A DNA stretch of 64,000 nt, taken from positions 57,970,001 to 58,034,000 of the forward strand of contig NC_042997.1 in the NCBI RefSeq assembly GCF_006345805.1, written 5' to 3'. Origin of the DNA: Octopus sinensis. Its lineage: Eukaryota. Shown one piece after another: positions 8,607-57,401 of this stretch (within the stretch, counting starts at the first letter, position 1; every line of letters begins with the position of its first letter). The translations under genes and the position numbers were made by a program. The notes beneath the pieces are model-generated. The model was not told the DNA's origin. It did not search any database and worked only from the letters and a program-made list of their open reading frames with translations.

Positions 8607-9865
8607 AGGGCCGTACCGCGAAATTTTTTTCCCACGATAGTATCTGACCCCAATAATGAACTCATTTGCATACAGCCAATCAGAGCAGAACCACCTTTAT
8701 CCTTTCTTCTTTTCTAGTCAGTACCGTGCATTTCTTATTCCCCCCTTCTCTACTGGGAGACAGCGACTCTCCATCCTCTAACTACCTGTCGGGCAAAAGA
8801 ATAAATATATGTAAATAATATTTCTTCCTTCTTGGTGTTGCTCCTTCAATGTTCACTGGTTACTCCGACGTTGCCACAATAATACACTTGCCCAAATTGA
8901 ATTGCTGGAGTTATTTAATTTTTTCTAGAAATATGCTTTAAAAAAAACTTATATTTTCACCCAGTCAGGAAATAGGATTTGGAAGGTGTCATTTTGTGCG
9001 TGACTGCACATTTTGTCGTCAACATCCTGAAAATGCTTACATTTCTTATATTTTCCGTGAAATTTTCACGGATCCAGCTAGTTATAATAAATAGATCTAT
9101 AATTTACTACTAATAATATAATAATACTCAGCGAAATTTTTTAGTACTCACATTTTCGTGACTATTTTTTTAAAAATCTTTTCTGCTTGGTTGCCAGCGT
9201 CAATTTTCTGTTCAAATTGATTTCATATTCAGTGTAATAATACACTTTCAAATTAATGAAGTGAAAGTAATTTTTTCGCTATAAATCAATAAAGAGTTAG
9301 TAGTAATTAAAGTTTGAAAATGTTGGTAATTTCAGTAAATCGTAAGCCACAGACACACATTCATGTTTTTTCTCTTTTAAATTAACATAAACATTTATTT
9401 ATATGAAAGAAAATTACTGGAGACATAACGTGTTGTTTACAAATATTGACAACATGTGCTATTTTGTCACGTACAAAATGACAGCTTCAAAATCATGTTT
9501 CTTGACTGGATGAAAATGATCAAACTTTAAACCTCAATAACTTTTTTAAAACATTTTTCTAGAAAAAAAATGAAATAACTCCAGTAATTGAGTTTGGGCA
9601 AGTGTATTGTGCCAACGTCGGAGTAACCAGTGAACATCGAAGGATCAACACCGAGAAGGAAGAAATATTATTTACATATATTTATTCGTTTTCCCGACAG
9701 GTAGTTAGAGGAAGTTGTTGTCTGCCAGTAGAGAGGGAAAGAGTAAGGAATGCACGGTACTGACTAGAAAGGATAAAGGTGGTCTGCTTTGATTGGCTAT
9801 ATGCAAATGAGTTCATTACTGGGGTCCGAAACACTCGTGGGATAAAAAATTTCGCAGTCGGCCCC
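8607..9865. mobile_element. Foldback/long-TIR non-autonomous DNA transposon (~400-bp imperfect arms)
   Basis: ~8607-9020 is the diverged reverse complement of ~9450-9865; AT-rich spacer; a partial copy of the inner arm occurs at ~11790-11945. No TSD found. Confidence 0.75.
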
Positions 9866-12800
9866 AGGGTTGCTGTCGTCCCAAACAAGCTGAACTGTAC
9901 AAGCTTTCGGTCGTGGAAATTTCCTTGTCTTTGTCACGCCCTCCTTGGTTCCCCTTACCACATGGCGACCCAAGTTCCCCGGTTTTTTCCAGTGTATCAC
10001 TGAAATAATACTAAAAGATGTTAGCTTCACACACGCACACCTTATTGAGCAGTTTTTCACTTTTTTCATTCTTATAGCTGGAATTTCATTTCATATTTTC
10101 CCTCTTAACTGTCACTACTTCATTGCTTTAACGTCACACCTTTATTGTTATCTCTATGTGTAGCATGTGTCAGACATAGTAGTTGGCACTAAACCTAGTG
10201 GTAAAAAGTACACTTGCATTACATACAAAAAAAATGTGTTTATACCATTTGCAATATTCTGTTAACATGGATATCATTTATTATCTATCAAGGTAACTCA
10301 CAAATATGGCCTCTTTGAAGAAGAAAAATAGTGACCAAGCTGGCATTTATTTATTGCATCTAGTTTTTTAATGTTTCTATTAATTTTTTAAAAGTAATAT
10401 TACGCTTCCTTAGAGAAATTCTAATTGTGAAATATTTTTGTCCATGACCCTGGTTTTATTGTCAAGGTCGTGCCAACGGACATTAAATATTGCTGTAGCT
10501 GTTTCAGTCACATTGTTCTGTTTTATGAAATCTAATATAGCCATCGACTGTAGTAATGCTGTGAGTGTGTTGGCTTGCTTCAGTAGATTCCGTTAAACCT
10601 TGTGGTGTGATAAAAAAAAATCCCCTCAAATGCTTCCATACAGTTTTGATAGAAAAATTTAGAAGAATTAGACGAAAGTTCGGTAATTTTCTTTCATGTA
10701 AATGTTTATGTTAATTTAAACATTTGTCAGCAAAATCTTATAAAATCACAGTGATCTAAGAGATGTACATGTTTACATGTTATATATATGAAAATAAAAA
10801 TTTTATCAAGCCAGTTATTTTAATACAATAAATACATAATCTTACAAGTTTGCTAATGTGTTTGTGTGTCTGTGTGCGCGAATTACGTAACTTAATATTT
10901 CGTTATGAACAAAATTACTGTTACCGTATTCTTTCGGAACAGACTGTTGAATATTTATCAATGAATAGTTAATATTGTTTTGAGCTTTTAGCCTATAAAA
11001 ATATTTAGCTTTCCTCCACAACTGTTTTGGGAAAACAAACACTTATTCTATTGTGCCTAAGGTATTGCAATATTGTCGTAGTTTTCATAATATAATTTTG
11101 TTCACACGTTGATACTTTATACGAATGTAAATCGGCACCAGTATTTGAATGGCCTTTGTATTTTATTGAACTTAGTAGGATGAAAGGCAAAGTTAAACTT
11201 GGCGCGATTTGAACTAAGAACGTAAGGGACCATAGCAAAGCATTTTGTTCAACGGTCTGACGATTCCGCGAAGGTCGATTTTGCCTTATCTTCTATAACT
11301 GATAAAATAAGTAGTGATTAAATATCTCCTTCGAAATGTTTAGCATCACGACGTTAAAAATCATTGGATTAGCAGTGTCGTCAGTATCAGACAAAACAAA
11401 GCCCTTGCGGTAATTATTCCGACACCTTACAGTCTAAGTTCAGACCTTCCTTTCAGTATCAGTCGAGTATTGCGGTCGAAGTAACCGACTTTCTCCTCTC
11501 AAAATTGCAGCCTTGAACCAAAATCTGAAATCGTCATCATCATCATGATTATTAATTTTATTATTGTTACCATGCCAGACAAAATGCTTCGCAGTATTTC
11601 TTCTGGTTCGAAGTTCAAATGCTGCCGAGGTTAACTTAGTCTTTTATCCTTTCGGGCTCGATAAACTAGAATAAAATACCCCCCACCCCAAGTTTCAGGA
11701 CTTGTGCTTATAGTAGAAAAAATGGATCTAGTTGGTTTGGCTGACAGCATTTTAAAAATTAAAGTTTATCGAATTTTTTTTTTAATTTGGCACATTAATA
11801 TACTTTTCCAAACTGAAATGCTGGAGTTATTTTACTTTTACCAGAAAAAATGTTTTTATAAAGTTATAGAGGTTTAAAGTTTTGATCATTTTCACCCAGT
11901 GAAGAAACAAGATTTGGAAGCTGTCATTTTGTGTGTAACTGCTGAAAATAGCGCGTTTTTAACTGTAAACAAATCAAATTCTGCTTAATGTACGACATAT
12001 AGCCCCTCATGACTTTTTTAAATTTGAAATTTTCAGAAAAATTTTGCAAATTTGTACTCTACACATGGGAATCCATACGATTATGCGAAGAACATTTTAA
12101 TGGGCGGGGGATTTAAGGCCTATTTAGCTGTTATTTGTAGCACATCTCACGACCATGATACAAGCAACAGAACACAGTTTCAACGCACATAACATCGTAT
12201 AGAATATATTTGACATGTACTTTCTAACTGACAAAAGAGTTCTAATGTCTGGTTTGTTACTATGGAAACAGGCATGAATGTGTCTGTGGCTTATGATTGG
12301 CTAAAATTACCCAACATTTTCAAACTTTAATTGCTAATAACTCTTTATTTTCATGTCATTCATTAGCCTATAAAAGTGTATCATTACATTGAATATGAAA
12401 TCAATTAGAACAGAAATTAATGCTGGCAGCCAGACAAACTAGATCTGAAAGAATAATTATCATTAATATTGTCTCAACTCTTGTCTTTCAATTGTCAAAT
12501 CTAGACATGTGATTGGATCCTTGACCTTGCAGATCCTTGGACACAATACTGATACAATCATACACCAAATACTAACAGATTTGATAGACTTAAAATAAAA
12601 TGTGTACTCAGGGTCAATTCGGTCAACTATATTCTTTACATGAAAACATTTCTAACCTGTATGATGTAAGAAATAAATGGCACCAAACTAAATATTTTGT
12701 GATATTTAATTAACGTCTGTTTACATTGCTTATTCAAGTCTTGCTAGAGTCAACGCCTTTCATTACTTTTGAGGTTGATTAAGTGCCAGTGTCAATTAAG

Positions 12801-14480: not shown

Positions 14481-17400
14481 GTTGTATTTCGGGATGGTCA
14501 TTTTTTGTTTTTTTTTTGTTTTTCCAAAATAAACATGCACTATATACCATATATACTTGGCTATAAGTCACACTTTATTACCCTGAAATTTTCTTTTAAA
14601 GTTGGGGTGCAACTTATAAATGCATCCTATAAAAAAATTTTCAGATATTTTCTTGGTACAAGCCATGTCTGAAGTTCCGACACTTGGAATAACTGAAAAA
14701 ACCTGAATCACTAATTCTGAAACCAAGAAGTATTTGGAAGACGATCTTTAGATATTTCTTTACTTATTTTAGTATGAAATAGGCAATTAATTTTAAAAAG
14801 TGAGTTTAATACTTGTTTGTTTTTGTACTGTACTTGTCTTTCTGTAATTTGACACCATGTTATTTGTTAACATGAAGAGAAAGAGGAATTTGTATGATAT
14901 CACTTTCAAACTGAAAGTTGTTGAATATGTAAAGTCGCATTTGAATCAAGGTGCAGAAAGAGAACTTGGGGTCCCAGAAAAAATGGTCAGGGATTGGCGT
15001 TTGAAAGAGGAGAAAATAAAATCTATAGACATCAAATTGTTAAAGAAAATTAGTATAGGAATGAGTCCCAATGAAGAGATGGAAGCTATTTTGAGAGACT
15101 GAACTACGCACAAATGGACTTGTCATCACAAGAAACATCATTAGATTGTGGGATCTCCAAGTAACTAAAGCACATGATATATCTGACTCTAAAGCATCTC
15201 CTGGCTGGTGTACAAGGTTTATGAAATGCCACAATCTTATGCTGAGATTGCACAGAAATTACTTGCCAACATAGAGAGAGCAAAGTTGATTCCTTCCATC
15301 GGTGTGTAATAGATCTACGAAAGAGCCACAAGTTTGCCTTGGAAGCAATCGATAATATGGATTAGACATCCCTTTTTTCAATATAGTTGAAACTCGGACA
15401 GTTGACATTAAAGGAAAAAACACAATTTCGGTAAAAACTATGGGGAGCAACAAGGCTCACTTCACTGCAATTTTGGCTTGTATAGCTGACAATATGAAAC
15501 TTACCCCAGCTGTTGTTTTCAAAAGAAAGACTTTCCCAAAGGGAAGTTTCCAAAGGGTATGGTGGTGTATGTTCTGGAGAAAGTGGGGGTGGAGGAAACC
15601 GTATTGACGAACTGGTTAAACAGTGTGTGGTTCAAGTGCCCAGGGGTTATGCTTAAGTCAAAGTCACTTCTTGTATGGGATATACTCAGGCTCATCTGAT
15701 CGACAGCATAAATTATAGATTAAAGGAGCATTGTACATACCAAGCTGTGATTCCAGGTGGGTGTACATCTGTGCTTCAGCCACTCAACATGTCAGTGAGC
15801 AAGCCTTTTATGGTGAACATGCATGCCAAATGGAATGAATGGCCAATTAATGGTGACAAAGAAATGACAAAGGCTGGGAACTTAAAATGCCCTGACCTTT
15901 AGACTGTTTGCTAGTGGGTAATAGAGTCATGGACTGAAATATCGAGTGAACTTGTGATGAAATCATTTTTGAAGCGTGGGATCTCAAATTCCATGGATGG
16001 TACTAGAAATGTTATCCTCAGTGCTTCATCAGTTAATGAAGACCATGATCAGGATGTATATGACGAGACCATCACAACCGAGGAGTTTTACCAGTTTGGT
16101 GAAAGTGATGATTAATATAACTTGATTCTTCCTTCATTTATTCTTCAGATTTTTGTCACCATGTTTCATACACTTCCTTACAATTTAACCCTTTCATTAC
16201 CAACCTGGCTAAAACCAGCTCTGGCTCTGAGTACAAATGTCCATGTTTTCATAAGTTTTGAATTAAAATCTTCCACCAAACCTTAGTCACAATTTATGTT
16301 CCTAACACTAACTGAATGATAACCAAGTTATTTTACTAAATTCTTTGTTATATTTAAAGTAATTGAAAGAAACACAGAGCATCTCAAAATAAATGCAGTA
16401 ACGAAAGGGTTAAAACAGTTTATTGTATTTTTTTTTCCAATCATAGTGCATATGACTGCATGGTTTTGTGTGCCAGTTGCTGCAAAATTATTCTAATAAT
16501 GAAAGGCATAAATCAAAAAGTAAAGGGAAAGGATTAAGGCAATTAAGTCTCAATATGATAAGCAAGTCAACTAGCATTATCAAGGATAAAATTTTACATC
16601 ATAAACAACAGTTTCTAAAATGCATGGACTTAATGGGATAACAGTTGTTGTAAGTCATCTTCAGCTTACTGAAAGCTTGATTACTGAACAACTATGTCTG
16701 CATGATTCCTAATTCAACTTTGCTCTCCAACATAAAAAAAGTCACTGTGATTTATAGTCAGGTCAATGATAAAATTCCCGATTTGAACCTTGTAAGTTGG
16801 GTGGGGGTGTCTTATTGTGAGGATGTTTTATAGTCAAGTATATACAATATTCGTTCCTCACTTGTTTATTACTGTTTTTTTTCCTAACTCATGTTCATTT
16901 TCCTGAAATCTTTTGTCACACATCTGTGATCTTCTCAGTGACACTTTCCGTCTTCGTGTGTGCTCTTGCTCTACTTATTCCATTTTCAATGGACATGAGT
17001 GAGTTAGAATAAGAACAGTAATAAATGAGTGAAGAACAAATATATATTGCGCATGTTTATTTGGCAAAAAACAAAAATGACCATCCTGAAATACAATAAT
17101 ATCTGTTTCAACGTACAACTTCACACCAGGAATCTTGCAACGCAAATTCATAAACTCAAAAGGCATGCATTAATGCATGCCTTTTGAGACATGCATTAAT
17201 GCAAAATGGCATTAGTAATTGAAGCAGTTCAATAGTGGATTTAATTTTAAAAACGTTTTTGAATAAATAACAATTATGGTGATTAAGTGTCTATTTCAGT
17301 TAGTTATACATCCTTATTTTTCTTGGAGCAGATTAAAAACTAACAATAATTCCACTTCAACCTACATATAGTTAATACATTGGAACCGTAAACTTAATTG

Positions 17401-19368: not shown

Positions 19369-22300
19369 CTGTGTGTGTGTATGTGTTACTATAAACATGA
19401 AGTGTCAGGTGCAATTTTTCACCATAAATATTTGTGCATCTGTCTATATACATTTTCTTTGGCCACAATGAGCATTTATCTCTCTTTTTGTCAATCTGTC
19501 TCAACATTCACCATCACCACTTCCAACCATTGATACTCACACAGCCAACATCAACACGAAACATAATACAACTACATCCTTAATGCACAACAAGAGCAAC
19601 ACTAGCATAAGATAAGAAACTGCATCTAAAATAATCACTTGAGATAATGTGGTACTCTAGTGTATTTTAAATGTTGAATGAAATGTCTTTGATCTTAGGC
19701 CAATGAGGATTGATTTGGGACTAAACAGCAATACCAATAAAATTAAAAGAACATTATGACCACTACAATCACCTACAATATTCCCACCATTATCATTACC
19801 TCCAGCACTAACATCAAAACCAATGCAACTAACACCTCTACAAGTGCCACTACCAACCTACCAACTTTTGAATAGCCAACTAGCAACAACAATAATAATA
19901 TCAGAATGTCTGTAGCTATGTGGGTTGTATGTCAACGTAACTATTTGTGTATGTACATGTATGTGTGTGAGTTGATGGTGCATTTTTATGGTGCAATTTA
20001 GAGGTACATTGGTGAAGTGCCCATGAACCTGTAATCATAAAGTATTTTCTTCTACCTCGTTCCTTTTCATTTTCTCATTTCCATTCTTACATCTATAGGA
20101 ATAAGACAACAATCTTTTGCTATTACAAAATAGTTCTTTCCTAGTGCTATTTTTCACTGCATATTTGATGTGGATAGTTATTGATTGCTCCTGCTGTTGG
20201 ATTTATCTTCAATTCAACTTATCTAGAAAGAAATCATCAAGTGGAACTGAATGTAGTAGGGCAAAAAGGAATTGTTTTAGGATTACACTGGATATTAAAC
20301 TCGATGTTTTAAAAGGGCTTGAAGTAGAAGAAGAAAATCAACCTCATTGGCAAAGCATTGATACTTGCAACATCTACAGTGAGATCATTACATGACAATC
20401 GGGAGAAAATTAAATCAAGTGCTGAAGAATTTACTCAATTACCTGCTTGGATATTTTTTCAAAAAGAGAATGCCAGACATAATATTTCCAAATGCATTGC
20501 TTCTTTTAGACAGTGCACCAAACCAGCCAGTAAACTTAAATGAGCTTTCTGGTAATGTGAGAGTAGAATTTGTCCTTAACACTACAACTTCTTCATTCTA
20601 TCCAATGAATCAAGGTGTGATATCTAACTTCAAGGCATATATTATCTGTTAAGAACTTTCAAACAATTTATGGAAGTAGTTAGAGATTTATGAAAAAGGT
20701 TCAACGTAATGGATACTGATTCATGGGATGACAAAACCTTCAACTTTGAATGGTACTTGGTAAAAATATAAGGCCAGACAACATCCATAACTACAGTGTT
20801 ATCACAAATAGAATATCTACATCAAAATTGGAAAGATATGACACTTGCAAATGGAGTCATATAGGATGCTGTATTTGAATGATTAGTTGACGCTTTGTAG
20901 AAGTCATATAGGATGATGTAGTTGAATGATTTCTCTATAGAGAAAATTTATCTAATTAGGTGTTGATGCTGTTAGAACAAAAGTAAACTGAGAATACAAA
21001 TGAAAATACAGAAATTTCACCAACTCCACTTAAATGGACTGCAAAGAATATTGCTAAAAGGTTGGTACTTATAGAGTTTTTGCTGATCACCCTGATCATG
21101 AATGTGGCATAAAATTTACAAGAGGGGTTAACAATGTGCTCAGTTTCTACACTGAACTGTATAAAAAGATTTTTTGCTCCTCAATTAGATGAAATGTAAG
21201 ATAGAAAATAGTGTCCCTTGTCCTTCCAGTAACTCTTATTCCACCATCACCACAATCCCTCACACAGTAGTCAACATCTTTCGTGGTACTAATGTTCCCT
21301 ATTACATTATCATTATCATTATTACTATTATTATTTCTCTTCAAATATTTTCATGTATACATATTGCACTGTGTATAAAAATAGTTTTTTTTCTTTTTTT
21401 CTTGGGTTTCAAAAATGTCACTTATGATATGAGCATCAAGTGCACTGACATATATATTCATGTGTCAATAGTTTCAAATCTCTAAAGACCAATATTCTAC
21501 CAGTTTGTAATTTGGAATATCTTGTGACTTTTAAGAGCAATTATAACTGATTACAATGTTATAATAGTTGTACTCATGATAATTGTCTGTATTTATGAAT
21601 TTCCTCTGAGAAATGTAAAAGGAAGAGTCAGTCAATGTGATATAACAGCACAAATCATTTTCACTTTATAATCTTTTTTCAGGGGATATTAATTCTAGTC
21701 TCACATATTGTGATATTTGAATGCCAGCCTTAGGTGGTAATTCATCTATAGAATATTTCGTAATGCTTTCATTCCATTCTTGTAGTGTAAGAACATTTTA
21801 AGTTGATAATGACTTAGAATATTAAATTTGGAACCATTTTAAATTAAACATTGAAAATTGAATACATTTGAAAGTAAGGCATCCGTGGAAACTTAACAGA
21901 ATTGTTCCCAGAGCTATGTATAGTGATAAATTATATACAATTCTTCCTTTTATTTTCTGTATTTCAACTATATATTGAGAAAATAGAATGCTTTGTTTCT
22001 TATTGGTAGAATAATGCAATTAAAATTACACACTATGTGATTGTGAATACAGGTATGCAATGTAACATTATTTAGATGCAGTAAATATAGTAGTTCTTAA
22101 ATTATCACAATAATCAAGGTATATTTTATTGTCTTTAGGTCAAAATGTTTATGAGCAGATTGCTAAAGAAGTAAATGTTCGTTTTTTAAACTGTTAGAAG
22201 TTATGCTGTAGAGGCTAAGCCAAGATAGAATTTAATTACTAATGAAGAGAGAGAGAGAGAGAGAGAGAGATCTTACCTAAGGCTGCCTATGACAACTACA

Positions 22301-22416
22301 AGAGTTGGGATAGACAGTAGTTTTACTTCTGTTTCAGCAACCAAAAATTAGCTCACAGACTACCAGTTTCTGATTGGCTTTATGACAATGGCGAAACTAA
22401 AATATTGTCTGCATAA
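13085..22416 (+). CDS. Candidate unidentified multi-exon gene, 3' part (exons 13085-13163, 13667-13783, 17633-17725, 22139-22170, 22338-22416)
   Basis: All exons have pyrimidine-tract AG acceptors and all introns begin GT; phases 2-0, 0-0, 0-0, 0-2, 2-stop join into one open frame of ~132 aa ending ...HRLPVSDWLYDNGETKILSA*. No family recognised; the donor at 13784 (GTTTAG) is weak; alternative frames exist. Confidence 0.4.
13275..13488 (+). mobile_element. tRNA-SINE family B, near full length
   Basis: GGTGGCAAGCTGGCAGATAG head, AAGTTCAAAT B-box-like motif, AAATTTGAAACCAATATT tail. Confidence 0.8.
14547..16847 (+). mobile_element. Degenerate pogo-family (CENP-B/DDE_1) DNA transposon
   Basis: TA-flanked imperfect TIRs CCATATATACTTGGCTATAAG / rc TTGTATATACTTGACTATAAA (16/21); HTH-like ORF 14857-15102 (YDITFKLKVVEY...VPEKMVRDW) and DDE fragment VIPGGCTSVLQPLNMSVSKPF in 15675-15902; many stops and frameshifts. 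Confidence 0.8.
16189..16409. mobile_element. piggyBac-derived MITE nested in the pogo element
   Basis: TTAA TSDs at 16185-16188 and 16410-16413; TIRs CCCTTTCATTAC / GTAACGAAAGGG (11/12); 221 bp. Confidence 0.85.
17805..18350 (+). mobile_element. Tandem stack of three family-B SINEs
   Basis: Heads at ~17805, ~18034 and ~18293, each directly after an (ATT)n or (ATG)n tract; the third copy is truncated. Confidence 0.8.
20240..21180 (+). mobile_element. Tigger/pogo-like transposase remnant
   Basis: RAKRNCFRITLDIKLDVLKGLE (psq-type HTH-like) and ALLLLDSAPNQP...TSSFYPMNQGVISNFKAY (DDE_1 QPxDQGVI-like) in broken ORFs 20117-20652. Confidence 0.6.
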
Positions 22417-28945: not shown

Positions 28946-29107
28946 GTAAATTGCAAGTGATATTTTTCATAATTCAGTTGTGTCTTTACTTGTTTCCAAT
29001 GAAAAATATTTGTCGTTGAAATATTCCTGCTCTACATCCTATTAAGATCTGCTTTTCACCCATATTCACTTCTAGTGTATCCAGTTGATGATGATTTTAA
29101 TTAGCTT

Positions 29108-30457
29108 GGAGTTATAGGAGTTTCAATGAATTTGGGAAGTTGTGATCTTCATGCATTCCAGTAGCACAGTGAAAGTAAATGCAAGAAATAGGCACAGGTG
29201 TGACTGTGTGTCAAGAAGCTTGCTTCCCAACCACATGGTTCTGGGTTCAGTCCCACTGCGTGGCCAAGTTTTTTCTACTATAGGGCTTTACTTGGGCTGA
29301 CCAAAGCTTTGTGAGTGGATTTGGGAGATGAAAATGGAAAGAAGCTCACCATATATATATATATGTGAGTGTGTTTGTTCATATATAACATATAAACATG
29401 TACATTTTTTAGAACATTGTCATTTTATAAGATTTTGCTGGCAAATTTTAAAATTAACATAAACATTTATTTACATGATAGAAAATTACCAGAGAACTTG
29501 CCAATCACCCTCATGGGCATCACTTGATGGCTTAGTAAGGCGAGCTGCCAACCTTGACAAGAACTTCGTGGTCAGTGGCCCAGTCCCTCCGAATGTCTCA
29601 AACACCACAGGTTGGAAGAACTAGTTCACTGTCATATCTCAATACTTCAGGGTTTTCTCCATTCAGCTGTGAAAGCAGTAACCCTCCCATTAACTACAGC
29701 ATCCAGGATGTGGGAGGGAGCAAAGGACTCACAGATTGTGGTGTCCCAAATGAAGCACCTACCTTTAACCCACTTGATGGAAAGAGACCAAGTGGGTTAA
29801 AGGTAGGTGCTTCATTTGGGACACCACAATCTGTGAGTCCTTTGCTCCCTCCCACATCCTGGATGCTGTAGTTAATGGGAGGGTTACTGCTTTCACAGCT
29901 GAATGGAGAAAACCCTGAAGTATTGAGATATGACAGTGAACTAGTTCTTCCAACCTGTGGTGTTTGAGACATTCGGAGGGACTGGGCCACTGACCACGAA
30001 GTTCTTGTCAAGGTTGGCAGCTCGCCTTACTAAGCCATCAAGTGATGCCCATGAGGGTGATTGGCAAGTTCTCTGGTAATTTTCTATCATGTAAATAAAT
30101 GTTTATGTTAATTTTAAAATTTGCCAGCAAAATCTTATAAAATGACAATGTTCTAAAAAATGTACATGTTTATATGTTATATATGAACACACACACTCAC
30201 ATATATATATATATGGTGAGCTTCTTTCCATTTCCATCTCCCAAATCCACTCACAAAGCTTTGGTCAGCCCAAGTAAAGCCCTATAGTAGAAAAAACTTG
30301 GCCACGCAGTGGGACTGAACCCAGAACCATGTGGTTGGGAAGCAAGCTTCTTGACACACAGTCACACCTGTGCCTATTTCTTGCATTTACTTTCACTGTG
30401 CTACTGGAATGCATGAAGATCACAACTTCCCAAATTCATTGAAACTCCTATAACTCC
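29108..30457. repeat. Near-perfect long palindrome: 669-bp arms, 12-bp spacer
   Basis: 29108-29776 is the reverse complement of 29789-30457; spacer ATGGAAAGAGAC; only two mismatches found by eye (29331/30234 and 29375/30190). Each arm carries a SINE copy and CRE 3' sequence. Confidence 0.97.
29490..29776 (-). mobile_element. CRE-clade non-LTR retrotransposon, restriction-like endonuclease 3' part (mirrored on + at ~29774-30075)
   Basis: DGKRP...WVKGRCFIWDTTICESFAPSH...AEWRK..KY...FQPVVFETFGGTG (PD-(D/E)xK-type RLE motifs) with stops and frameshifts. Confidence 0.75.
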
Positions 30458-31500
30458 TTGATGGCTCCAGAACTGAGAGGATATTAATCCGAGCCAGGGC
30501 CCATTAGGTTTAGCTTGGTGTGACAAGTGAAGCGACCAGCATTTAGGTGGCAAGACAGACCTTAAAGACCTGTTGGGTGGAAGGGCCTACCACAGCGGCA
30601 TCTTAGTCCCCTACGGATGTCAGCTCTCACTCTGAGTGTGATGGAGATGTGGAATTCATATAGACTGAGTAGACCTCCAATGTTAGCCACAGGCAGGGCA
30701 TCAATCCAGTCCCCTGAGAATTTTGCACTAGCTGAAAGTAGGCGACACCTCAAAAATCGATCAGATTGATGAAGGATAAAGTTGAAAGTGACACTTGAAC
30801 GCAGATTGTCCCATTCTCTGTTTCCGGCTATCCTCCACTGTAACCAGAACTGACAAACCCAGCTCTCTCCACTGTGATAGAGCTTCATCCTTCTCCCTGT
30901 TGGAAATAGTCTATGTTGGAGAGGAGAGGATGTTCCCTATCAAAGAGGAGCAAGTGTGGATGGAGGAAAGAAAACAGGGAAGTTTGGTCAAAGTATCTTG
31001 GTCGCAGGAGCCTGGGGAGAGACATTGACCAATCATTTTGGTTTTCTGAAGATTAGGTCATCAAATTATTGGAGGGATGACAGGAATCTGTAAGAAGGAC
31101 TGACTCTCAGAAAATACAATAGCTTAGGAATCGACAAGTAATTCCTAAGTATAAAAAAACCTTAGTGGGGCTCAATTACTTCAAGGTTTTTTAAAAGTTG
31201 TTCGAGGTTAGCCATGTTGGATCTAAAGATAGACTTGAAAGCTAGGTCAGTAATTGGGGCTCCAAGGGAGCACCATGCTAATGAAGGAGAAATCACGATT
31301 GAGTGAAGAGAATCAACAAATAAACATTTCAGCTGGGTGATTGAGGAACCAGAGCTGGCATTTGGAGCTGTTAACGTTAACACCTCTATGACCAAGTTCC
31401 TCAATAATCGTCTTCACAGTTGCAAGCACTTTGTCAGGAGGGTCTCCCAAACAAGCATCATCAAGGTACCAGACACATTTTTCAGTTGGTGTTTGTTGTT
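30458..31500 (-). mobile_element. CRE-clade non-LTR retrotransposon remnant (RT and CCHC region)
   Basis: WYLDD RT motif at 31457-31471; RLLSASAKFSGDWIDALP...LRCRCG...GLSC...AGRF..H zinc-knuckle region; ...INILSVLEPS immediately before the palindrome junction. Confidence 0.8.
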
Positions 31501-31582
31501 TAGGTTTGTACATGAATGGTATCAAGTTTGAAAAAAAAACCATTTTAGCTTTTAATCTACTTATTAGTTCTTGTTTGTGTAT

Positions 31583-32433
31583 CATCATCATCATCATCCT
31601 CATTTAACGTCCGCTTTCCATGCTAGCATGGGTTGGACGGTTTAACTGGAGTCTGGGGAGCCCAAAGGCTGCACCAGGCCAGTCAGATCTGGCAGTGTTT
31701 CTACAGCTGGATGCCCTTCCTAACGCCAACCACTCCGAGAGTGTAGTGGGTGATTTTATGTGCCACCGACACAGGTGCCAGACGAGGCTGGCGAACGGCC
31801 ACGCTCGGATGGTGTTTTTTATGTGCCACCGACACAGGTGCCAGACGAGGCTGGCAGACGGCCACACTCGGATGGTGTTTTTATGTGCCACCGACACAAG
31901 TGCCAGATGAGGCTGGCGAACGGCCACGATCGGATGGTGCTTGTTACGTGCCCACAGCACGGAGGCCAGTCGATGCGGTACTGGCTACGGCCACGTTCAG
32001 ATGGTTTTCTTGTGTGCCACCGGCACTGGTACCACAAAGATACAAATTCCATTGATGTTCATCTATTTTGATTTGGTTTGATTTTCACTTGCCTCAACAG
32101 GTCTTCACAACTGTCACACACTTGCCTCAACAGGTCTTCACAAGTGTCACATACTTGCCTCAACAGGTCTTCACAAGTGTCATAAGAAGGAAGGTATGCA
32201 CAGGTGGACTGACTACGTCCCAGGTAGGGGCCACGGGTTATGGCCTGACTAGTCTTGCCGGGTCTTTGGATGGTGTTTTTATGTGCCACCAACACAGGTG
32301 CCAGATGAGGCTGGCGAACGGCCACGATCGGATGGTGTTTGTTACGTGCCCACAGCACGGAGGCCAGTCGATGTGGTACTGGCTACCGCCACGTTCGGAT
32401 GGTTTTCTTGTGTGCCAGAAAACCATCCGAACG
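31583..32433 (-). mobile_element. RTE-tail retroposon with internal tandem repeats
   Basis: (ATC)n tail plus TTTAACGTCCGCTTTCCATGCTAGCATGGGTTGGACGG (3' end shared with other RTE tails here); three 62-63-bp units (31758-31945), three 33-bp units (32086-32182), block ~31870-32010 repeated at ~32268-32416. Confidence 0.75.
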
Positions 32434-35912: not shown

Positions 35913-36007
35913 GTGACCCTGTTACAATTAGTAACCAATTTAAAGTAATTGAAGATGGTGTGCAACACCTCATTGCCAAATTTGCTGAAATTCTGAAGAA
36001 AAAGTCT
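35913..36007 (+). CDS. Universal stress protein gene, exon 3
   Basis: TTTTGAAACAG|GT ... TCT|GTAAGT; DPVTISNQFKVIEDGVQHLIAKFAEILKKKS; phase 1-0. Confidence 0.85.
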
Positions 36008-38310
36008 GTAAGTTCTCAACTAAATACTTTTAGGAAGAATAAGTAATATTGATGGAGAGGGATAGTTAAGTAGTATTAATTACTGGTGTCACACTTAACT
36101 GGTTGTATGATTGCTGCTGTTTGCTGGTTGTGATCATTTTACATTAAAAAATGAAGACTCAAGAACATTCTTATCAAAGTATAAAGAGTAAAGACTCCCT
36201 TCAGTCATGAATGACCATGGGATTGCACCTAGAAAGTTCCCCTCCAAGGCACAAGTCCAGGCAAGGTTCTTAATGGAAAACCAGCAGTTGCCTGTGCATA
36301 CCAGCCCCTCCCTCTCCATGCCATTGATGTTATCCAAGGGAATTGCAAAGACTGATAAAGCTTGGCACTAGTGATGTTGCAGCTCATTTCTACAGCTGAG
36401 TGAACTGGAGCAATGTAAAATAACGTGTTATGCTCAAGAAGACAACACACAACCTGGTTTGGGATTCAAACTCATTACTTCTTGATTGTGGACCTGATGC
36501 CCTCTCCACTGACCCATGCACCTTCACTCTCTCTATACCAAAGTATAATTTTTGATACAAACAGTATTGACACTTAGTGCGTGTTCTGTACTATCAGTTC
36601 ATGTTAGGACTAACTTAATCTTTCTTCTCTTTAGCTACTGCACAAAGTATTTCAGAGATACTATTATATATAATATTATACCATACTACACTGATCCATT
36701 TCACACCACATACTGTACTACACCTTATTCTACTGTATTACGATACCCTAACATGCCATGCTATTATACACCATACCTTATTATATACAAAACAATGAAG
36801 GGATATCTACATAGTTGGCCTGCTATTTCTAGGTAGAACACATTGGAAAGTCTAACACCAGTTGAATAATAGACCTGATGTTCTGGGCTGGAATACCTTT
36901 GATAATAAGTCTGCTCAATCAATACCAACCTGGGGCTAAATAACATAATATACTAAGCCACAGCCTACAAGTGGACAAGCAAAACACATACATTGAATAT
37001 GTGTGATCAATAATGTTTACAACACTAGCACTGCTTCTAATACATATGCATCATTGTGGCATACTAGCAAATGGTTTTTACACTATTTGTATAGTCATAG
37101 ACTGGCAATTCCTTGTATAAATCATATTACATCAACACCTGCCTGCCACAACAGAATTGAGATCCTAAAACCAAGGTACTATGTAAAAAGCTTTGGTGTG
37201 AGTACTGGTGCCATGTTAAAAGCACTGGTGATGGTGACACATAAAATGCACTCAGTATACTTTGTGGAGTGGTTGGCATTAAGAAGGGCATTGAGCCATA
37301 GAAACCAAGTCAAAACAGACTAGGAAACCTGATGTGGCCCCTGGCCTTGCAAGTTCCTGTCAAGCCATCCAACCCATGCCAGCATGGAAAATGGACATTA
37401 AAGGTTGATGATAATGATGGTGATTCTCAACTACACCACAAGGCAACAAGGGAGTTTCTTTTAAAGTAAGTGCAGTAAGTCAGGAAATTTCAATGACTAT
37501 GCACTTGTGTATTGTTTGATTTTTGACTATAGAAGGGAGAAGCCAAACATAACATGAGGGGCTGTTGAAATAGTAAAAGTTTTGTGTTGGTCCTGTAGAC
37601 TCACAGGTCAATGACTTGAGCCTAGACACATATACACCTATTATTAATTTACAATTAATGTCAGAATTGAAACATAAGGGAGTGCTGACCTTGGTGATAG
37701 TCATTTGCAATGCATATCATATAGTAGTGCTGTATATCTTTCATGAACTCCTATTACCTCCTCCTATTGACAATAAACTACCATTTGAGAAAATGAGCAT
37801 TGAAAAGAAATGATTACTTGGTATGCTGTAATTTATTCAAAATACTTCATAAAACAGTCATTACAAATATAAACCTTAAAAACAAAAAACACTGTTATCA
37901 CTAGAACTACTAAATAGTATTCTATAAGTCTATACCCAATTTCAGAGATTTCCAAAATTGTGTGCCATCACACTTTGGTATGTCACTGATAATATCCAAG
38001 TGTGTTATGAAATTATGTCAAATCTGGTTAATTCTTATGAATGTTTTTGACTGAAGTAAGTGACTGATGTCACATGAAATGATATTTGTTTATTTATTAA
38101 TTTCCTTAGTTTCATAATGCCAACAACGTTTAATTAATGTACTGCAAAATATCTTATTTTTAAAAAGTATATCACTAACAGGAAAAGTTTTGAAGCTCTG
38201 CTCTGTTTTGTGAACATTTTTTTCATGCCTTTCCATCTTTTTGAATAACTAGATTTCTCTTTAAGTATTAACATCTCAGTTATATTTCTCTTTATCTCAT
38301 TATGTTCCAG

Positions 38311-38505
38311 ATTAAGGGCAAAGTTTTAAGACTCACTGGCAAACCCAAGGAAGCAATTATTGCTGCTTCAAAAGAAGAGAAAGCAAACATGATTGTAACT
38401 GGTACCCGAGGGCTTGGAATTGTAGGCCGTACTATACTGGGCAGTGTTAGTGATTATGTGGCCCATAATGCTCAAATTCCAGTTGTTATTGTCCGCAAAG
38501 AGTAA
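38311..38505 (+). CDS. Universal stress protein gene, last exon
   Basis: TTCCAG|ATT; IKGKVLRLTGKPKEAII...MIVTGTRGLGIVGRTILGSVSDYVAHNAQIPVVIVRKE*; contains the USP ATP-binding G-2X-G-9X-GS motif. Confidence 0.93.
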   Translation: MKGKVLRLTGKPKEAIIAASKEEKANMIVTGTRGLGIVGRTILGSVSDYVAHNAQIPVVIVRKE

Positions 38506-38891: not shown

Positions 38892-40153
38892 TCTTTGGAG
38901 CAAGTTGTCTCGCCTGTCAATAACTTTTAGGTGTGTTAACACCTGGCACTTCAAGGGAGTCATCCCCACCACACTAAACCGCAGCCTACTGGCAAATGAG
39001 AAAAACATGCATTTAATATGTGTGGTCGATAATGTTTACAACATTAGCGCTACTTCTATTTCATATTTGAATTCATTCTTTCATCATCATCATGGCATAC
39101 CAGCAAATGGTTTTTACACTATTTGTCTATAGTCATAGACTGGCAATTCCATTTGCCTCTGATTTGGTTCAGGTATGTGATGTTGATAAGCCACAAAAGT
39201 GGTGAAATTTCAATTTCCATTGCTCCTGAATGGAATTTGGGGTGTATTGTTTTGCCTGTCTATGACTTTCAGGTGTTTTAACACCTGGCACTTTGAGGTT
39301 TGTCATCCCTAGTGGTAAACATCCAAAGCACATACACTGAGTGTGTGTGATCGATAATGTTTACAATATTAGCACTACTTCTAATTCATATTTGAATATA
39401 TATATATATATATATATATTCAACTGCAGTCTTTTATATCATTATAACAATCATTTTCTTAACATTTTCCCTAACTTTCTTTTGGTTTTCTACATATCTA
39501 ATTATACTCTCATATGTTTATTAACAGAAAATCTTAATATCTCTTTGTGAGCAAGCATTTTTATGAAAGTTTCCAATAACTATTACCAAAATGGAGAGAT
39601 GATTTCAAGAGTTATCATCCTGTTGAACAGATATCAAAACCTTCATTTGAATTCTATGAATCCATTGTTAGAAATATAGTTTGCTCAATAGTTTTTTTTA
39701 AATTTTATTTTTTATTGTTCAATAAAAGATAATAAAAATTTTAATAAATTCTATGTTTTGTTTTCTTTTTACTTGTAGAAGATTTGTTTTTAATTTCACT
39801 GAAATGAAGATAGGATATCAAACTTGAAATATTTATTAATACCATTACAATTTACCAAACTCTCAACTAACTTTTTCATTGATGAATATTTCTTTTCTTG
39901 TTAATTTTCTTTCTCTCTTCTGTAAATACTTCATTGACAAAACCCTCAGGCTATGACAACTCTTTTGGGTTTTTGTCAATTATTTTATATGTGTATCTGT
40001 GGAGCAAACTGTGAAATTTGGAGACATCAAAGATGTTTATGATTAGCAGAACAGAGCCATAAAATTTAGATAAGAGAATAATGATTTATTTCTTCAGCAC
40101 TATTCACCAAAATTTTAAATAACTTTTATTGTTGACAAATATTTCTTCTTATT

Positions 40154-40608
40154 TACATTATTTACAATTGATGGATATTTGTCCTCCTCTTGTTTGTTGT
40201 TGACACAATGTTTCGGCTGATATACCTTCCAGCCTTCATCAGGTGTCTTGGGGAAATTTTGAACCTGGGTTTTCATTCCTAACGTATTTTTGGATGTTGT
40301 TATTATTATTATTCTTATTATTCAGGTCACTACTTGGAATCGAACTCGGAATCTTGGGGTTAGTAGCCCGCGCTCTTAACCCCTAAGCCACATGCCCACG
40401 GGCATATGGTGTACTAACCCCAAGATTCTAAGTTCGATTCCAGGCAGTGACCTGAACAACAACAATGACGAAAAATACCATAGGAATGAGAACCCAGGTT
40501 TTAAATTTCCCCAAGACACTTAATGAAGGTTGGAAGGTATATCATCCAAAATGTTGTGTCAACAACAAACAAGATGAGGACAAGTATCTGTCAATTGTAA
40601 ATAATGTA
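40154..40608. mobile_element. Head-to-head pair of Penelope-like terminal repeats (tRNA-like head, (AAT)n, hammerhead motif)
   Basis: Imperfect inverted repeat centred at ~40398; the same unit flanks a GIY-YIG fragment at 55982-57135. Confidence 0.75.
40202..40247 (-). ncRNA. Minimal type I hammerhead ribozyme-like motif (PLE type)
   Basis: Minus-strand RNA GACAC-CUGAUGA-A-GGCUG-GAAGGUAUAU-CAGCC-GAAA-CAUU-GUGUC: stem I GACAC/GUGUC, intact CUGAUGA and GAAA cores, stem II GGCUG/CAGCC; stem III reduced and mismatched (ACAU, probably from ACGU). Confidence 0.65.
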
Positions 40609-40759
40609 AGTAATGCACATAATTCCTCATCTCTTAAATATAGAACTGTACTGTGGCCTTTGTTGTCCAGCTCAATAGTGGTTGACCTAGAACTAAGCAC
40701 CTACGACTTATAAAGCTCTCCTCACTTCTGTGAGTACCTCTAGGAACATTATGGAGAAA

Positions 40760-48777: not shown

Positions 48778-49069
48778 ATGATGAAAAAAATAACTGAAGA
48801 TGTAGAAGTGACAGAAGAAGTCAGTACTTCAGAAATCTATGTTAGCCCAGACGAAACTCCTATCACCCATTGTATTCTACATAACAGCGTTAAAATTCTG
48901 GTCGATACGTTAAACGATGAAGAAAATGAAATGTTAGTGCCTCCGTTATTGAACGAACGCAATGCTACGGGTAAATCACCGTTGGAGTTGTGCGCTATTC
49001 TGGGACGAACTGACATCATGAGAGAGTTGTTGTCAAAGGGAGCGGACGTCAACCTAGCCAACTGTGAAG
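48778..49069 (+). CDS. ANKRD45: Ankyrin repeat domain protein 45-like, exon 1
   Basis: LNERNATGKSPLELCAILGRTDIMRELLSKGADVNLANCE(G) ankyrin repeat; donor GAAG|GTATCA, phase 1. Symbol from recalled similarity, not a search. Confidence 0.8.
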
Positions 49070-50066
49070 GTATCAGATTTCTTAGTTCACCTCTGAAGTT
49101 CATGTCCCATACACCACACAGACGTACTTTACCATACTTCATTCTACCTCCACGACAGCTTTATTTGAAACAATTACATTTACAAAATCTTTTTTTTTTT
49201 AAACATTAAAATGAAAGGGTTGGAAAGTCAGCTTATGATTCGTGAATTCAAATTTATTCTTGACGTTTATATTTATTGATTCAGTTTCTGTATTAAGTTA
49301 AGGTAACTGTGGAGAATAGGTGCTCGTTAATTTTTCTGTGAAGCTACTTACTAGCAACCTACCCAGGTAGTAACTAGTTTTTCACCCACTTAACACAAGG
49401 AAGGAATGCAATAGGTCTATCAATCCTACTGACATACGTTTTCTAATGGTCAGCTACTCAACTCAAGAATCTGTGGTTCCAAATCTCATCAGATGTTCAG
49501 TTATTTTTTAAAAAAAGAGTATATATATTAAGGTTCTAGTTACTACTCCAAGTATCATCTCATTAACTTGTAAGATATAGAGTTGAGGCAAACAAGCTGA
49601 ATCAGTGAGCCTATTAAAATTCTCACTTGTACCTATTTTTATTCATTTACATTACAACGATGTAATTGAGAGATGTACTGACTTGTATCCGCCTTCTTTC
49701 CTTCTCCTATGATATGAAGCCTTGAGTCTAGTCAAAAGAAATCAGTGGAAAAGAAAGACTATATCTTAGTAAATTCTCATTGAGTATTTGAAAAGTCATA
49801 AATTAATAAGGGAAATTCAATCATTAACATGTCATAAATTTTTAAAAGGCAGTGGATAGTTGATATGTTACAGTATCTTAAAAGCTTTGTAGTAATTATT
49901 TGCACCCACTTTACATTCTTTATATACAGCCCTTTTACAGTCCTGCTGGGAGTTGAATTCGACTTCTGTTCTCCTAAGATCTATATATGATGAAGTCCTA
50001 ATGTAAGAAATCATTTCTTTATAAATGTCTCTAAAATAGTGCCATATGATATTAATTTTGTCTTTA

Positions 50067-51808: not shown

Positions 51809-53101
51809 CGAGGGGCGTTCAATAAGTAATGCCCCTGACCCACCTCCCATAGCAGTAGAGCAACGAAACTTGGCACAGTTATTAGTCTTTTTCTATATAG
51901 GAACCACCCAGAGTTACGCATTTCTCCCATCGTTTGATGCAGCTCTGGAGACCATTTTTGTAGAAGACCCCAGCTTGGTCCTCCAACCACGACGTGACTT
52001 CAGAAATCAAGGCTGCATCATTTGGGAAACGCTTTCCTTTCAAAAACAACTTCATGGCTGGGAAGAAGTGAAAATCAGAGGGTGCAAGGTCAGGAGAGTA
52101 GGGGGGATGGGGGAGGAGTTCATAGCCGCACACCTGTGCTTCTGATCTGGCGACACGCGAGTTGTGGACCGGAGCGTTGTCTTGCAGGAGGAGGATGCCT
52201 TTGCTGATCTTGCCCCACCTCTTGATTTTGATAGCTTCTCTTAATTTCCTCAAAAGTGAAGCATAACAGGCTCCTGTAATTGTGGTACCCTTTTCCAGGA
52301 AATCTGTCATCACTACTCCGTCCTGGTCCCAGAAGACTGTGAGCGTGACCTTGCCAGCGGAGGGCTGCACCCTTGCCTTCTTTGGAGGAGGTGAGTCGTG
52401 GTGCTTCCACTGCACTGACTCGGCTTTGGTCTCTGGATCATAGTGATGGACCCAGGTTTCATCCTGTGTAATCAGTCTTTCGAAAAATTTTTACTCATCT
52501 TCTTGGCACATCTTCCAATTCATCCTCGAGCACTCAACGCGTTCTTGCTTCTGGAAAGGTGTGAGCAACCTGGGAATCCATCTGGCAGACACCTTTTGCA
52601 TATGCAAATGGTCATGAATGATAGTTTCCACAGAACCGGTACTAATCTTGACCTCATGGGCTATTTGGCGAATAGTTATGCGTCGATCTTCCAAAATGGC
52701 TGCCTCAACTTGACGGACAGATGCCTCATCAATGGCAGAAGGGGGACGACCAGATCTGGGAGCTGTTTTCACAGAGTTCTGACCATGTTTGAATTTACGA
52801 TGCCAGCGTTTTACAAGGTCATATGATGGGGCATCATCACCATAAGTTACTTTCATTTCATCAAAAGTCTTCCGTGGTGTGCATCCTTTCAAATACAAAA
52901 ACCGGATCACTACTCGACACTCAACAGGCTCCATTTCACACTTGACTCAGTTCAAACACCTGTAAATCAGAAACCACAATTAGTTCAGAGCTGTAATTTG
53001 CCACTTAATCTATAAAGATATCAATAATTGCACATGCAACATTTCAGCTAGGTCAAACAACTGCAAGTGGGTCAGAGGCATTACTTATTGAACGTCCCTC
53101 G
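51809..53101 (-). mobile_element. Full-length mariner transposon (1293 bp)
   Basis: TA TSDs at 51807-51808 and 53102-53103; 35-bp TIRs CGAGGG(G/A)CGTTCAATAAGTAATGCC(C/T)CTGACCCAC with 2 mismatches. Confidence 0.97.
51882..52934 (-). pseudogene. Mariner DD34D transposase with a single premature stop
   Basis: 350-codon frame: HTH N-terminus, WIPRLL, QDETW, QDNA-(34 aa)-D in YSPDLAPSD; in-frame TAA at 52491-52493 is the only lesion seen. Confidence 0.93.
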
Positions 53102-53691
53102 TATACCTGATATCCTCCCATCTCCACATTCATGCACACATGTATATCATGACTCATATATTTCACTTTCCTGACATTTGTACATAATTTTATGTGCTAT
53201 ACATGACACTTTGATAAATTGTAGTGCACCTGAGCACTATACACAATAATTTCATTATTATTATTATTATGTAGATTGAAAACCTGTAAGATAATAATAA
53301 CCGTTGCATTTTATCCACTAGGTCATTTTTAGGTCAGTCTGACATTGCAAGTATGTTGTTTTGACTGTGTAATCTACATTAGTCTCCATTTCCTACTACT
53401 CTTAACCGTGCAATGAAGGCATTTCTGAGTACCCACTAAAGTATTCTGTAAATGCTCCAGCACACAAACACTTAATTAAAACTTGTTAAAAAGTGTAGTT
53501 GTATTGTAAGTAATTATTGTGTGTTCTGCAGTTGCTATTTGGAGCTATTTAAAGGTCAATAAACTAATGAAGGACTGATCAACCATTAATACATAGATAT
53601 GATTTTGAATAGTCAAATGCTTGTCTCTGCTTATGTACAAGAGCAAAGGATAAATAAATATTTATCTTTCACCCTTTGTTTCTATTTTTAG

Positions 53692-53859
53692 GGTACACTC
53701 CTGCTCATTATGCATCTGCCTGGGGTCAAGTTGCTGTTCTCAAAATCCTGACAGAGTTTGGTGCTGATCTTACAATAACTAATATCCGTAGTGAAAGCCC
53801 AAAGGATATAGCCCAACGTTATGGAAAAGTTGAATGCATTGACTTCATTGACTGGGCTT
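53692..53859 (+). CDS. ANKRD45: ANKRD45-like, exon 2
   Basis: TTTTTAG|GG ... GCTT|GTAAGA; GYTPAHYASAWGQVAVLKILTEFGAD...CIDFIDWA; phase 1-1. Confidence 0.9.
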
Positions 53860-54374
53860 GTAAGAAATCCTGTAGTTTTTCATATAAATTCTATGGGTTT
53901 TAATATAGGGGCTTCTTCTAGAACTTTAGAATGAATGTTTAAAAGTGTGTTTGTTTTATGTTTATCTATGCATGCATATGTACATGTATGTATGTTTATA
54001 TGTGCATGTCTGTGTATATATGTACAAGTGTACTCTTATCATAGTATGTAAGGTAAAGAGAGTGAATAAATATATGAGGGAGGGGGAAGAGAAAGTGGGA
54101 GAGAGAGAACGATGCTAATTCTAATGAAGCTAGCTGTAATAATTATTTCATTGTTGTTAACTTTTCATTCCTACAGGGATTGTATAGTACTGTATAATTT
54201 CAGATGCTAACATAAATTGTTATACGACGATAAGGTGATATTGATATTAAGTATATCAGTGTTTTTTTCTTTCTTTTTTTTTTTTTTATGAAAGATATCA
54301 GTTAAAATGGTGCAGCTAACGCTTGCTTTCATATTTAACCATTAAACAATTACATGACATATTGGTTTCAAATT

Positions 54375-56946: not shown

Positions 56947-56988
<42 letters not shown>

Positions 56989-57135
56989 CATCGGAAAAAA
57001 AAATACCTTAGGAATGAGAACCCAGGTTCAAAATTTCCCCAAGACACCTGATGGAGGCTTGAGGGTATATCAGCCAAAACATTGTGTTAACAACAAACAA
57101 GATGAGGACAAATATTCGTCAAATGTAAATAATGC
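55982..57135 (-). mobile_element. Penelope-like element remnant with GIY-YIG fragment and direct plus inverted terminal repeats
   Basis: Minus strand: CEYSIPCS...KTCHPLKIRVEEHHKAV..GDIDKSSIVDHVW..GDH...EVKIIDREHRWK..KLKEA (GIY-YIG C-terminal region); terminal repeat units at ~55982-56225 (-), ~56795-56880 (-) and ~56884-57135 (+). Confidence 0.75.
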
Positions 57136-57401
57136 AACTAATGTAGTATAGGATGTTACCCAGGTACTCAACTAACAGTCCACTACATCTTATAACAGAA
57201 ACAGCTGTAAGCTAATGAAGTTCATTACATAACCTTTGTTTTTTTCCAGCATCATCATTTTTTCCTATTACCACTCTATACTCATCTAACATTGTGTTCT
57301 GGACCATATGTATATTGAGGTCTACACTAAGTTATTAGTCCCACTATGCCTAAGTGAAATATTAAGATAATATAATATGATATATATATATATATATATA
57401 T

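Follow-up and report, generated by a model that had tools for sequence, protein, structure and literature searches.

The palindromic AT-rich repeats (PATRRs) of the human genome are near-perfect palindromes of several hundred base pairs, and they are unstable. We analyzed a 64,000-nucleotide stretch of DNA from Octopus sinensis (NCBI RefSeq assembly GCF_006345805.1, contig NC_042997.1, positions 57,970,001 to 58,034,000 of the forward strand; called the window here and numbered from its first letter) in which a near-perfect palindrome of 1.35 kb interrupts a decayed R2/CRE-type non-long-terminal-repeat (non-LTR) retrotransposon. The locus resembles PATRRs and other long near-perfect palindromes in its scale of several hundred base pairs, in its near-perfection, and in the cruciforms or hairpins and the instability to be expected of it. 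Unlike PATRRs, it is not AT-rich overall (39 to 45% G+C in 2-kb windows across the palindrome), and it is made of recognizable transposon pieces that leave its origin readable. The palindrome is a well-resolved case of a known process, microhomology-mediated inverted duplication, and reveals neither a new mechanism nor a new kind of element. We give a slightly better than even chance to the reading in which the inverted duplication is real, probably young, located in repeat-rich noncoding octopus DNA, and made by a replication template switch.

Three described mechanisms come closest. In template-switch mutations, whether described by the four-point model or as fork stalling and template switching (FoSTeS) and microhomology-mediated break-induced replication (MMBIR), the descendant tract is the reverse complement of adjacent ancestral DNA, the product is a perfect inverted repeat, and there are two novel junctions with 2 to 4 nucleotides (nt) of microhomology (PMC7954356), all of which have counterparts here. 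The octopus event differs in its 681-nt tract, in lying far below the kilobase-to-megabase human copy-number variants, and in having an ancestor that must be reconstructed. Fold-back inversions at double-strand breaks (PMC3907307, PMC10622511, PMC7467729) share with this locus a central short inverted repeat, a small spacer, and loss of adjacent sequence. Those cases are usually large, terminal, and chromosome scale, whereas this one is interstitial and 0.7 kb long, and its spacer orientation misfits a simple fold-back. Finally, junctions made by origin-dependent inverted-repeat amplification (ODIRA) retain a short repeat and spacer (PMC10766186), and the CTTG-N12-CAAG center of the palindrome is of that type. 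However, ODIRA produces an inverted triplication that spans a replication origin and has two such junctions, with spacers of 40 to 80 nt in yeast; here there are two 669-bp copies, the spacer is 12 nt, and the outer junction has only CC/GG and no inverted repeat.

Anatomy of the palindrome

An inverted-repeat search of the window recovered two arms of 669 nt each around a 12-nt spacer (Table 1), confirming at its exact position the near-perfect palindrome that an earlier note on this DNA had described. Base-by-base comparison, from which this anatomy is read directly, paired 667 of the 669 positions (99.7% identity). The only noncomplementary pairs are 29331 (A)/30234 and 29375 (T)/30190, the same count of two arm differences as in that note, and the strings it quoted (GAGCCATCAA, CTTGATGGAAAGAGACCA, and CAAG joined to TGGGTTAAAGG) were all found in place. 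Complementarity ceases sharply at the outer ends on both sides. The window is A+T-rich and eukaryote-like in composition and contains no N; its runner-up inverted repeat is only 159 nt long at 86% identity, so the 669-nt palindrome is far beyond chance. When the 1366-nt stretch was folded as RNA, it formed a single hairpin along its whole length, broken only by the two mismatches and closed by the 12-nt loop (minimum free energy, -1302.8 kcal/mol).

We refer to the DNA of one arm as D, to the retrotransposon remnant upstream of the palindrome as U, and to the left flank as F. There are two copies of D in the window. The left arm passes unbroken into F and is therefore the copy in the original orientation; the right arm meets U at the outer junction, J1. 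The 4-bp inverted repeat CTTG ... CAAG on either side of the spacer would have provided the microhomology for a strand switch or a fold-back. At J1, CC/GG is possibly a 2-nt microhomology, since related elements have TCA AGG at this place, and the 8 nt from 30457 to 30464, CTTGATGG, repeat those from 29773 to 29780. The nearest thing to a target-site duplication is not clean: CTTG occurs at 29104-29107 and again at 30457-30460, but the two are offset by 1 nt and share a C/G base with the arm.

Each arm is a mosaic of an R2/CRE-like retrotransposon remnant, an unclassified repeat, a microsatellite, an old repeat resembling a short interspersed nuclear element (SINE), and 82 nt of single-copy DNA. 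As a unit, the arms are not multicopy in the window. This composition, with its single-copy DNA, shows that the arms are a local inverted duplication of ordinary chromosome and not a transposon's own inverted ends. A transposon with terminal inverted repeats, or a foldback element, was rejected because the arm edge and the left flank are single copy in the window. Twin priming at insertion of the retrotransposon was also ruled out: the arms include flanking DNA outside the element (the SINE-like repeat and the 82-nt single-copy segment), and the 99.7% likeness of the arms contrasts with the age of the element. The unclassified repeat is A+T-rich and lies just after the retrotransposon remnant; it has a second, partial copy (49 nt, 90%) at 9375-9423.

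Other members of the SINE-like repeat in the window share only about 75% identity with the one in the arms, compared with 99.7% between the arms. At 29331/30234, three of the four other SINE copies have G, the right-arm state. The second mismatch, 29375/30190, lies in a (GT)n tail that is uninterrupted in the right arm and interrupted in the left. The suggestion that the right arm is the more ancestral at both sites thus finds support at the first and is plausible at the second, where the right-arm repeat is unbroken.

The interrupted retrotransposon and the orientation of the spacer

U contains the YLDD region of a reverse transcriptase and a Cys/His motif and ends in ...INILSVLEPS(R) at 30458, as expected from the minus-strand frame that the earlier note had followed to ...LEPS. 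The window copy matches RVT_1 weakly (E = 0.092). A word-indexed protein search returned a single relative, P0001, from a Logan contig, and an exhaustive HMMER search with P0001 as the query returned 1715 relatives at E ≤ 0.001. Two full-length relatives, P0071 and P0078, match RVT_1 at 1.3e-19 and 6.8e-18, and P0071 matches solved R2 proteins at 2.4e-08. In P0001 and in P0070 to P0104, the Cys/His motif is followed by an LEP.GL.R.DGKRPDG..L.PW..G..L.WD.T block, which the window holds as pieces. Judged by the RVT_1 domain, the R2 protein matches, and this conserved C-terminal block in the relatives, the interrupted element is a retrotransposon of the R2/CRE type, in which the endonuclease region is C-terminal. 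Directly 5' of the truncated reverse transcriptase remnant stand tandem repeats with 63-bp and 33-bp units (31754-31952 and 32086-32182, with diverged copies to about 32420), which mark the point where the retrotransposon copy is cut off.

We compared the window with the DNA of relatives at four loci, L001, L002, L003, and L006. L002 comes from assembly GCA_951406725.2, which we take to be Octopus vulgaris. L006 is a short contig in a metagenome-labeled sample (ENA scaffold, ERZ23491055) and is presumably host or environmental animal DNA. All four loci carry LEPS-(G/R)LSR-x-DGKRP-DGLTLCP-W between the parts that are split in the window. The alignment of L001 covers window positions 30903 to 30456, read downward, at 76% and has TCAAGG as its last bases; it resumes in both arms from TGG at 29772/29793, where the arm coding sequence starts (WVKGRC...). 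The intervening 48 nt of L001 encode LSRIDEKILDGLALCP.

Read on the plus strand with 4 nt on each side, the spacer gives CTT GAT GGA AAG AGA CCA, or LDGKRP. The four relatives have ATT GAT GAA AAG ATA CTA, TGT GAT GGA AAT AGA CCT, TGT GAT GGG AAG AGA CTT, and ACT GAA GGT AAA AGA CCA at this site. In the best local alignments of plus-strand CTTGATGGAAAGAGACCA to the relatives' codons, 13 of 15 positions match L001 (ungapped) and 14 of 15 match L002, and a shuffle test of the local alignments gave P ≤ 0.0005 against both. In the minus orientation, only L001 was matched (12 of 14 to its LALCP codons; P = 0.003), and L002 gave P = 0.6. The purine-rich DGKRP codons and the pyrimidine-rich DGL..CP codons of this family are partly complementary, which predicts a certain degree of matching in the wrong orientation. 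By our own estimate, this comparison argues very strongly for a spacer that reads in the same sense as the right arm and runs opposite to U, the left arm, and F. Its orientation relative to the family is observed directly; the inversion is measured against a reconstructed ancestor, and recombination of the two arms at a later time could have flipped the spacer into the same orientation.

The family comparison thus supports a structure of U, then spacer plus D (681 nt) inverted, then D in its original orientation, and then F. This is the arrangement proposed earlier: LDGKRP forms the spacer, 681 bp run opposite to the upstream part, and a second copy of the arm follows in the original orientation. 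We also considered a model in which U directly adjoined D in the ancestor and random, untemplated filler supplied the 8 nt AAAGAGAC. Those 8 nt match the relatives' codons at 7 of 8 positions (AAAGATAC in L001 and AAATAGAC in L002; about 4e-4 per comparison by a binomial estimate), and the random-filler model was rejected on this match.

Origin and age of the inverted duplication

The favored origin, two template switches during replication, can be written out on a reconstructed ancestor. In the retrotransposon sense (minus strand), this ancestor would have read U...GAG CCA TCA AGG, about 9 nt, CTT GAT GGA AAG AGA CCA AG, TGG GTT...(D)...AACTCC, and then F. The nascent plus strand would have copied F and D as far as ...CCCACTTG. 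Its 3' CTTG would then have annealed to the same-polarity strand at the CAAG 12 nt farther on (the CTTG-N12-CAAG inverted repeat), and backward copying of that strand would have added 681 nt, the spacer and all of D. A return to the original template just past the starting point, at CC/GG beside ...CCATCAAGG, would have skipped about 27 nt. We infer the ancestor's sequence, the succession of steps, and the enzymes; in the four-point notation of PMC7954356, the order is 3-1-2-4 by our own mapping.

We built the ancestor from the window plus about 9 bases borrowed from a relative, all of which are deleted by the event. Applied to it, the two-switch (four-point) operation directly regenerates the 64,000-base window except at 30190 and 30234. 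The earlier proposal of a two-switch origin with CAAG microhomology therefore accounts for the window bar two sites, but a fold-back followed by a flip of the spacer gives the same sequence. A possible cause of fork stalling, an ancestral hairpin CCATCAAG-N10-CTTGATGG, was dropped as too weak (-7.9 kcal/mol; z = -1.87), and its loop was borrowed from the relative.

Several points weigh against two switches at a fork. The approximately 9 nt between AGG and CTTGAT are borrowed, which makes the figure of about 27 nt for the deletion a guess. In addition, about 19 nt between KRP and W (DGLTLCP) must already have been missing from this copy. Microhomology at the outer junction amounts to 2 nt at most, and a 681-nt switch tract greatly exceeds the tens to hundreds of nucleotides usual for short-range template switches. 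A pre-event comparison with 16 exact open reading frames (ORFs) from the window, including center-spanning and outer-junction-spanning frames and controls, found 0 of 16 in a collection of 15 billion proteins. Lastly, the DGL..CP codons of one relative also resemble the spacer when it is read on the minus strand (12 of 14), a reading that would favor simple fold-back priming.

Fold-back priming at a break is the main rival. A break upstream of D would leave a resected 3' tail, ...CTTG-N12-CAAG, that folds back, primes about 670 nt of synthesis, and is end-joined to U at CC/GG. The center of the palindrome holds exactly the short interrupted inverted repeat that such a fold-back needs, one break accounts for both the small deletion and the outer junction, the 12-of-14 match of the minus-strand spacer to L001 fits, and fold-back inverted duplications are well documented (PMC3907307, PMC10622511, PMC7467729). 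However, a fold-back leaves the spacer in its ancestral orientation beside the original arm, and the family comparison puts it in sense with the right, inverted arm. To rescue the fold-back requires either a later flip of the spacer by arm recombination or a chance DGKRP match (about 1 in 100 or less by our own estimate). Fold-back priming thus explains every feature except the spacer orientation, an objection that a later flip between the 669-bp arms would remove, and we consider it unlikely as the origin of the palindrome. Only the orientation of the spacer discriminates between strand switching at a fork and a break-primed fold-back. In an unduplicated allele, read in the retrotransposon sense, the template switch predicts GATGGAAAGAGAC beside D and the fold-back predicts GTCTCTTTCCAT.

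The inverted copy could also be absent from the animal if a chimeric molecule or read, or an assembly graph error, had created it. Fold-back artifacts are common in nanopore genomic reads, at about 0.55 to 0.6% (PMC12870357), and whole-genome amplification yields palindromic chimeras (PMC6218980). Both arm differences lie in low-complexity sequence, and their 0.3% level also fits misassigned heterozygous sites. However, fold-back reads have the fold near the read midpoint and arms that reach the read ends (PMC12870357), whereas these 669-bp arms stop at a second precise junction, with unique DNA on both sides and more than 30 kb beyond that junction; this architecture argues against a fold-back read. 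An artifact would need two chimeric junctions and a small deletion, and it would have to win the consensus. PacBio HiFi data contain virtually no fold-back reads (PMC12870357), a point that bears on this locus only if HiFi was the platform used for the window. We regard an artifact as distinctly unlikely.

With only two differences in 669 bp (0.3%), the event is probably young, but the Poisson range is wide. The claim that the duplication is recent stands as likely: the arms contain old repeats and are nonetheless 99.7% alike, but gene conversion could also produce such identity. Arm identity alone cannot tell youth from concerted evolution, and gene conversion is known to maintain palindrome arms (PMC6790999). 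An old palindrome homogenized by arm-to-arm conversion, as in sex chromosome palindromes, is nevertheless quite improbable in our judgment. Palindromes in general are unstable, and those with very short spacers are reported to be unstable wherever introduced and rare in natural genomes (PMC10766186), which makes long persistence with a 12-nt spacer unlikely. If real, the palindrome shows that a germline assembly can contain a near-perfect 1.35-kb example whose spacer is just 12 nt, despite this reported instability. It would also be unusually legible, since the coding remnant comes from a conserved retrotransposon protein whose relatives allow the pre-event sequence to be inferred, and both breakpoints, along with the spacer orientation, can be read to the base.

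Table 1. Coordinates of the palindrome, its parts, and nearby coding features in the window
Feature	Position	Strand	Details
Left arm (D in retrotransposon sense, minus strand)	29108..29776	-	Aligned to relative L001 921-1086 from 29772 downwards
Center, 4-bp inverted repeat flanking spacer (CTTG-N12-CAAG)	29773..29792	.	
Spacer ATGGAAAGAGAC, 12 nt	29777..29788	+	Base check; shuffle test
Right arm (D in retrotransposon sense, plus strand; inverted copy joined to spacer)	29789..30457	+	
Outer junction J1	30456..30465	.	Arm end ...AACTCC meets TTGATGGCTCC (reverse complement of ...GGAGCCATCAA)
Retrotransposon C-terminal coding remnant (KWVKGRCFIWDTTICESFAPSHILDAVV...) in right arm	29789..30060 (end approximate)	+	Left-arm mirror 29505-29776
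Unclassified repeat in arm	30065..30184	.	Mirror 29381-29500; 86% copy at 10676-10787
TA/TG microsatellite and SINE-like repeat in arm	30186..30377	.	Mirror 29188-29379; contains both arm mismatches
Single-copy DNA, 82 nt, arm outer end	30376..30457	.	Mirror 29108-29189; no other copy in window
Upstream remnant U of decayed R2/CRE-type non-LTR retrotransposon	30458..31560	-	76% to L001, 65% to L002
Universal stress protein (USP; UspA domain) internal exon	35914..36008	+	cag acceptor, gtaagt donor
USP last exon, stop codon included	38311..38505	+	92-94% protein identity to Octopus bimaculoides A0A0L8HGA8

RNA potential, neighboring genes, and other repeats

The palindrome gives no sign of a function. 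At the DNA level, fragility and the formation of hairpins or cruciforms would hypothetically be expected. A transcript of it would hypothetically contain about 667 bp of near-perfect double-stranded RNA (dsRNA), a strong, natural substrate for ADAR; editing load tracks dsRNA abundance across animals, octopus included (PMC5625713). In this it would be like inverted Alu pairs and fly hairpin-RNA loci, which supply long dsRNA of the type hyperedited by ADAR. Unlike those, its 99.7% arm match is far above that of typical repeat pairs, and small RNAs are unlikely in molluscs. A survey of 32 molluscs that included O. bimaculoides found no dedicated small interfering RNA (siRNA) pathway (PMC12479628), which makes endogenous siRNA production unlikely and runs contrary to the idea that the palindrome is an endo-siRNA substrate.

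A selected hairpin-RNA gene, supplying small RNAs or diverting editing enzymes as a decoy, or else a transposon of the foldback type would fit the extremely stable predicted RNA hairpin and the presence of foldback-like repeat families in the window (I2, I5). However, the arms are transposon debris and single-copy DNA with no further copy in the window, there is no clean target-site duplication, and the left flank is not a continuation of the interrupted element. A search for known RNA families in Rfam gave only subthreshold look-alikes of microRNA-like and other hairpins at the palindrome tip (at most 40.8 bits against thresholds of 47 to 100), and the lack of a dedicated siRNA pathway in molluscs (PMC12479628) counts against a small-RNA source. 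We find such a gene or transposon very improbable. ARAGORN found no tRNA in the window.

The setting of the palindrome bears on whether it might be transcribed. The earlier note had suggested that it probably lies in intron 1 of a USP gene. The recognizable USP exons start 5.4 kb downstream of the palindrome and have proper splice sites; compared with A0A0L8HGA8 by tblastn, the internal exon is 80% identical and the last exon 92% identical, with 94% for the last exon in the homologue search. Since the internal exon begins at an acceptor, an upstream USP exon should exist. Regular-expression scans and three Pfam scans of plus-strand ORF segments from 31 to 35561 did not find an N-terminal Usp exon, which leaves the intron 1 location as a possibility. 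The segments scanned with Pfam were at least 30 amino acids (aa) long, and low-complexity, tandem-repeat, and palindrome-arm segments had been removed. The O. bimaculoides USP model is itself N-terminally incomplete. The sole motif-like match, at 22290-22350 (MTTTRVGIDSSFTSVSATKN), was dropped as a candidate exon because it has no splice donor.

It is a long shot, in our estimation, that the palindrome is real, lies in a USP intron or another transcript, and is transcribed, which would make it a newborn and exceptionally strong ADAR hyperediting target or enzyme sink in a cephalopod. If this reading were true, the palindrome may be polymorphic, and animals with and without it would provide a natural test of host expression and editing before it decays.

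Upstream of the USP exons, the Pfam scans matched only pogo/Tigger transposase remnants. These are decayed, lie on the plus strand at 14848-15900 and 20105-20650, and include DDE_1, HTH_Tnp_Tc5, and Brinker-like DNA-binding domains. Downstream of USP, the plus strand carries ankyrin-repeat exons of a neighboring gene at 48778-49070 (Pfam Ank_2, 2.6e-07) and, by eye, at about 53690-53880.

The window contains other inverted repeats. One pair of arms at 2832-2925/3163-3256 is 94 nt long at 97% identity with a 237-nt spacer, and another at 61969-62034/62082-62147 is 66 nt long at 95% with a 47-nt spacer. A cluster at 8621-8952/9537-9851 has four collinear blocks at 78 to 94% and a spacer of about 585 nt, within which lies the 9375-9423 partial copy of the unclassified arm repeat. 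The arms of both pairs and of cluster block 8774-8881 have no other copy in the window. All three are single-locus inverted repeats and may represent inverted duplications like the palindrome, only older or smaller, or low-copy miniature inverted-repeat transposable elements.

A separate repeat family with copies at 40149-40613, 56009-56214, and 56755-57141 resembles a foldback-type transposon, each copy having its own inverted repeat; the inverted repeats of this family include one of 159 nt at 86% with a 147-nt spacer and one of 118 nt at 79% with an 11-nt spacer. A mariner-type transposase lies on the minus strand at 51885-52946 as two open frames of 151 and 202 aa, counted from stop to stop, that correspond by eye to the DNA-binding part and the DDE part. 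It is apparently broken by a single frame change and is therefore probably a young copy.

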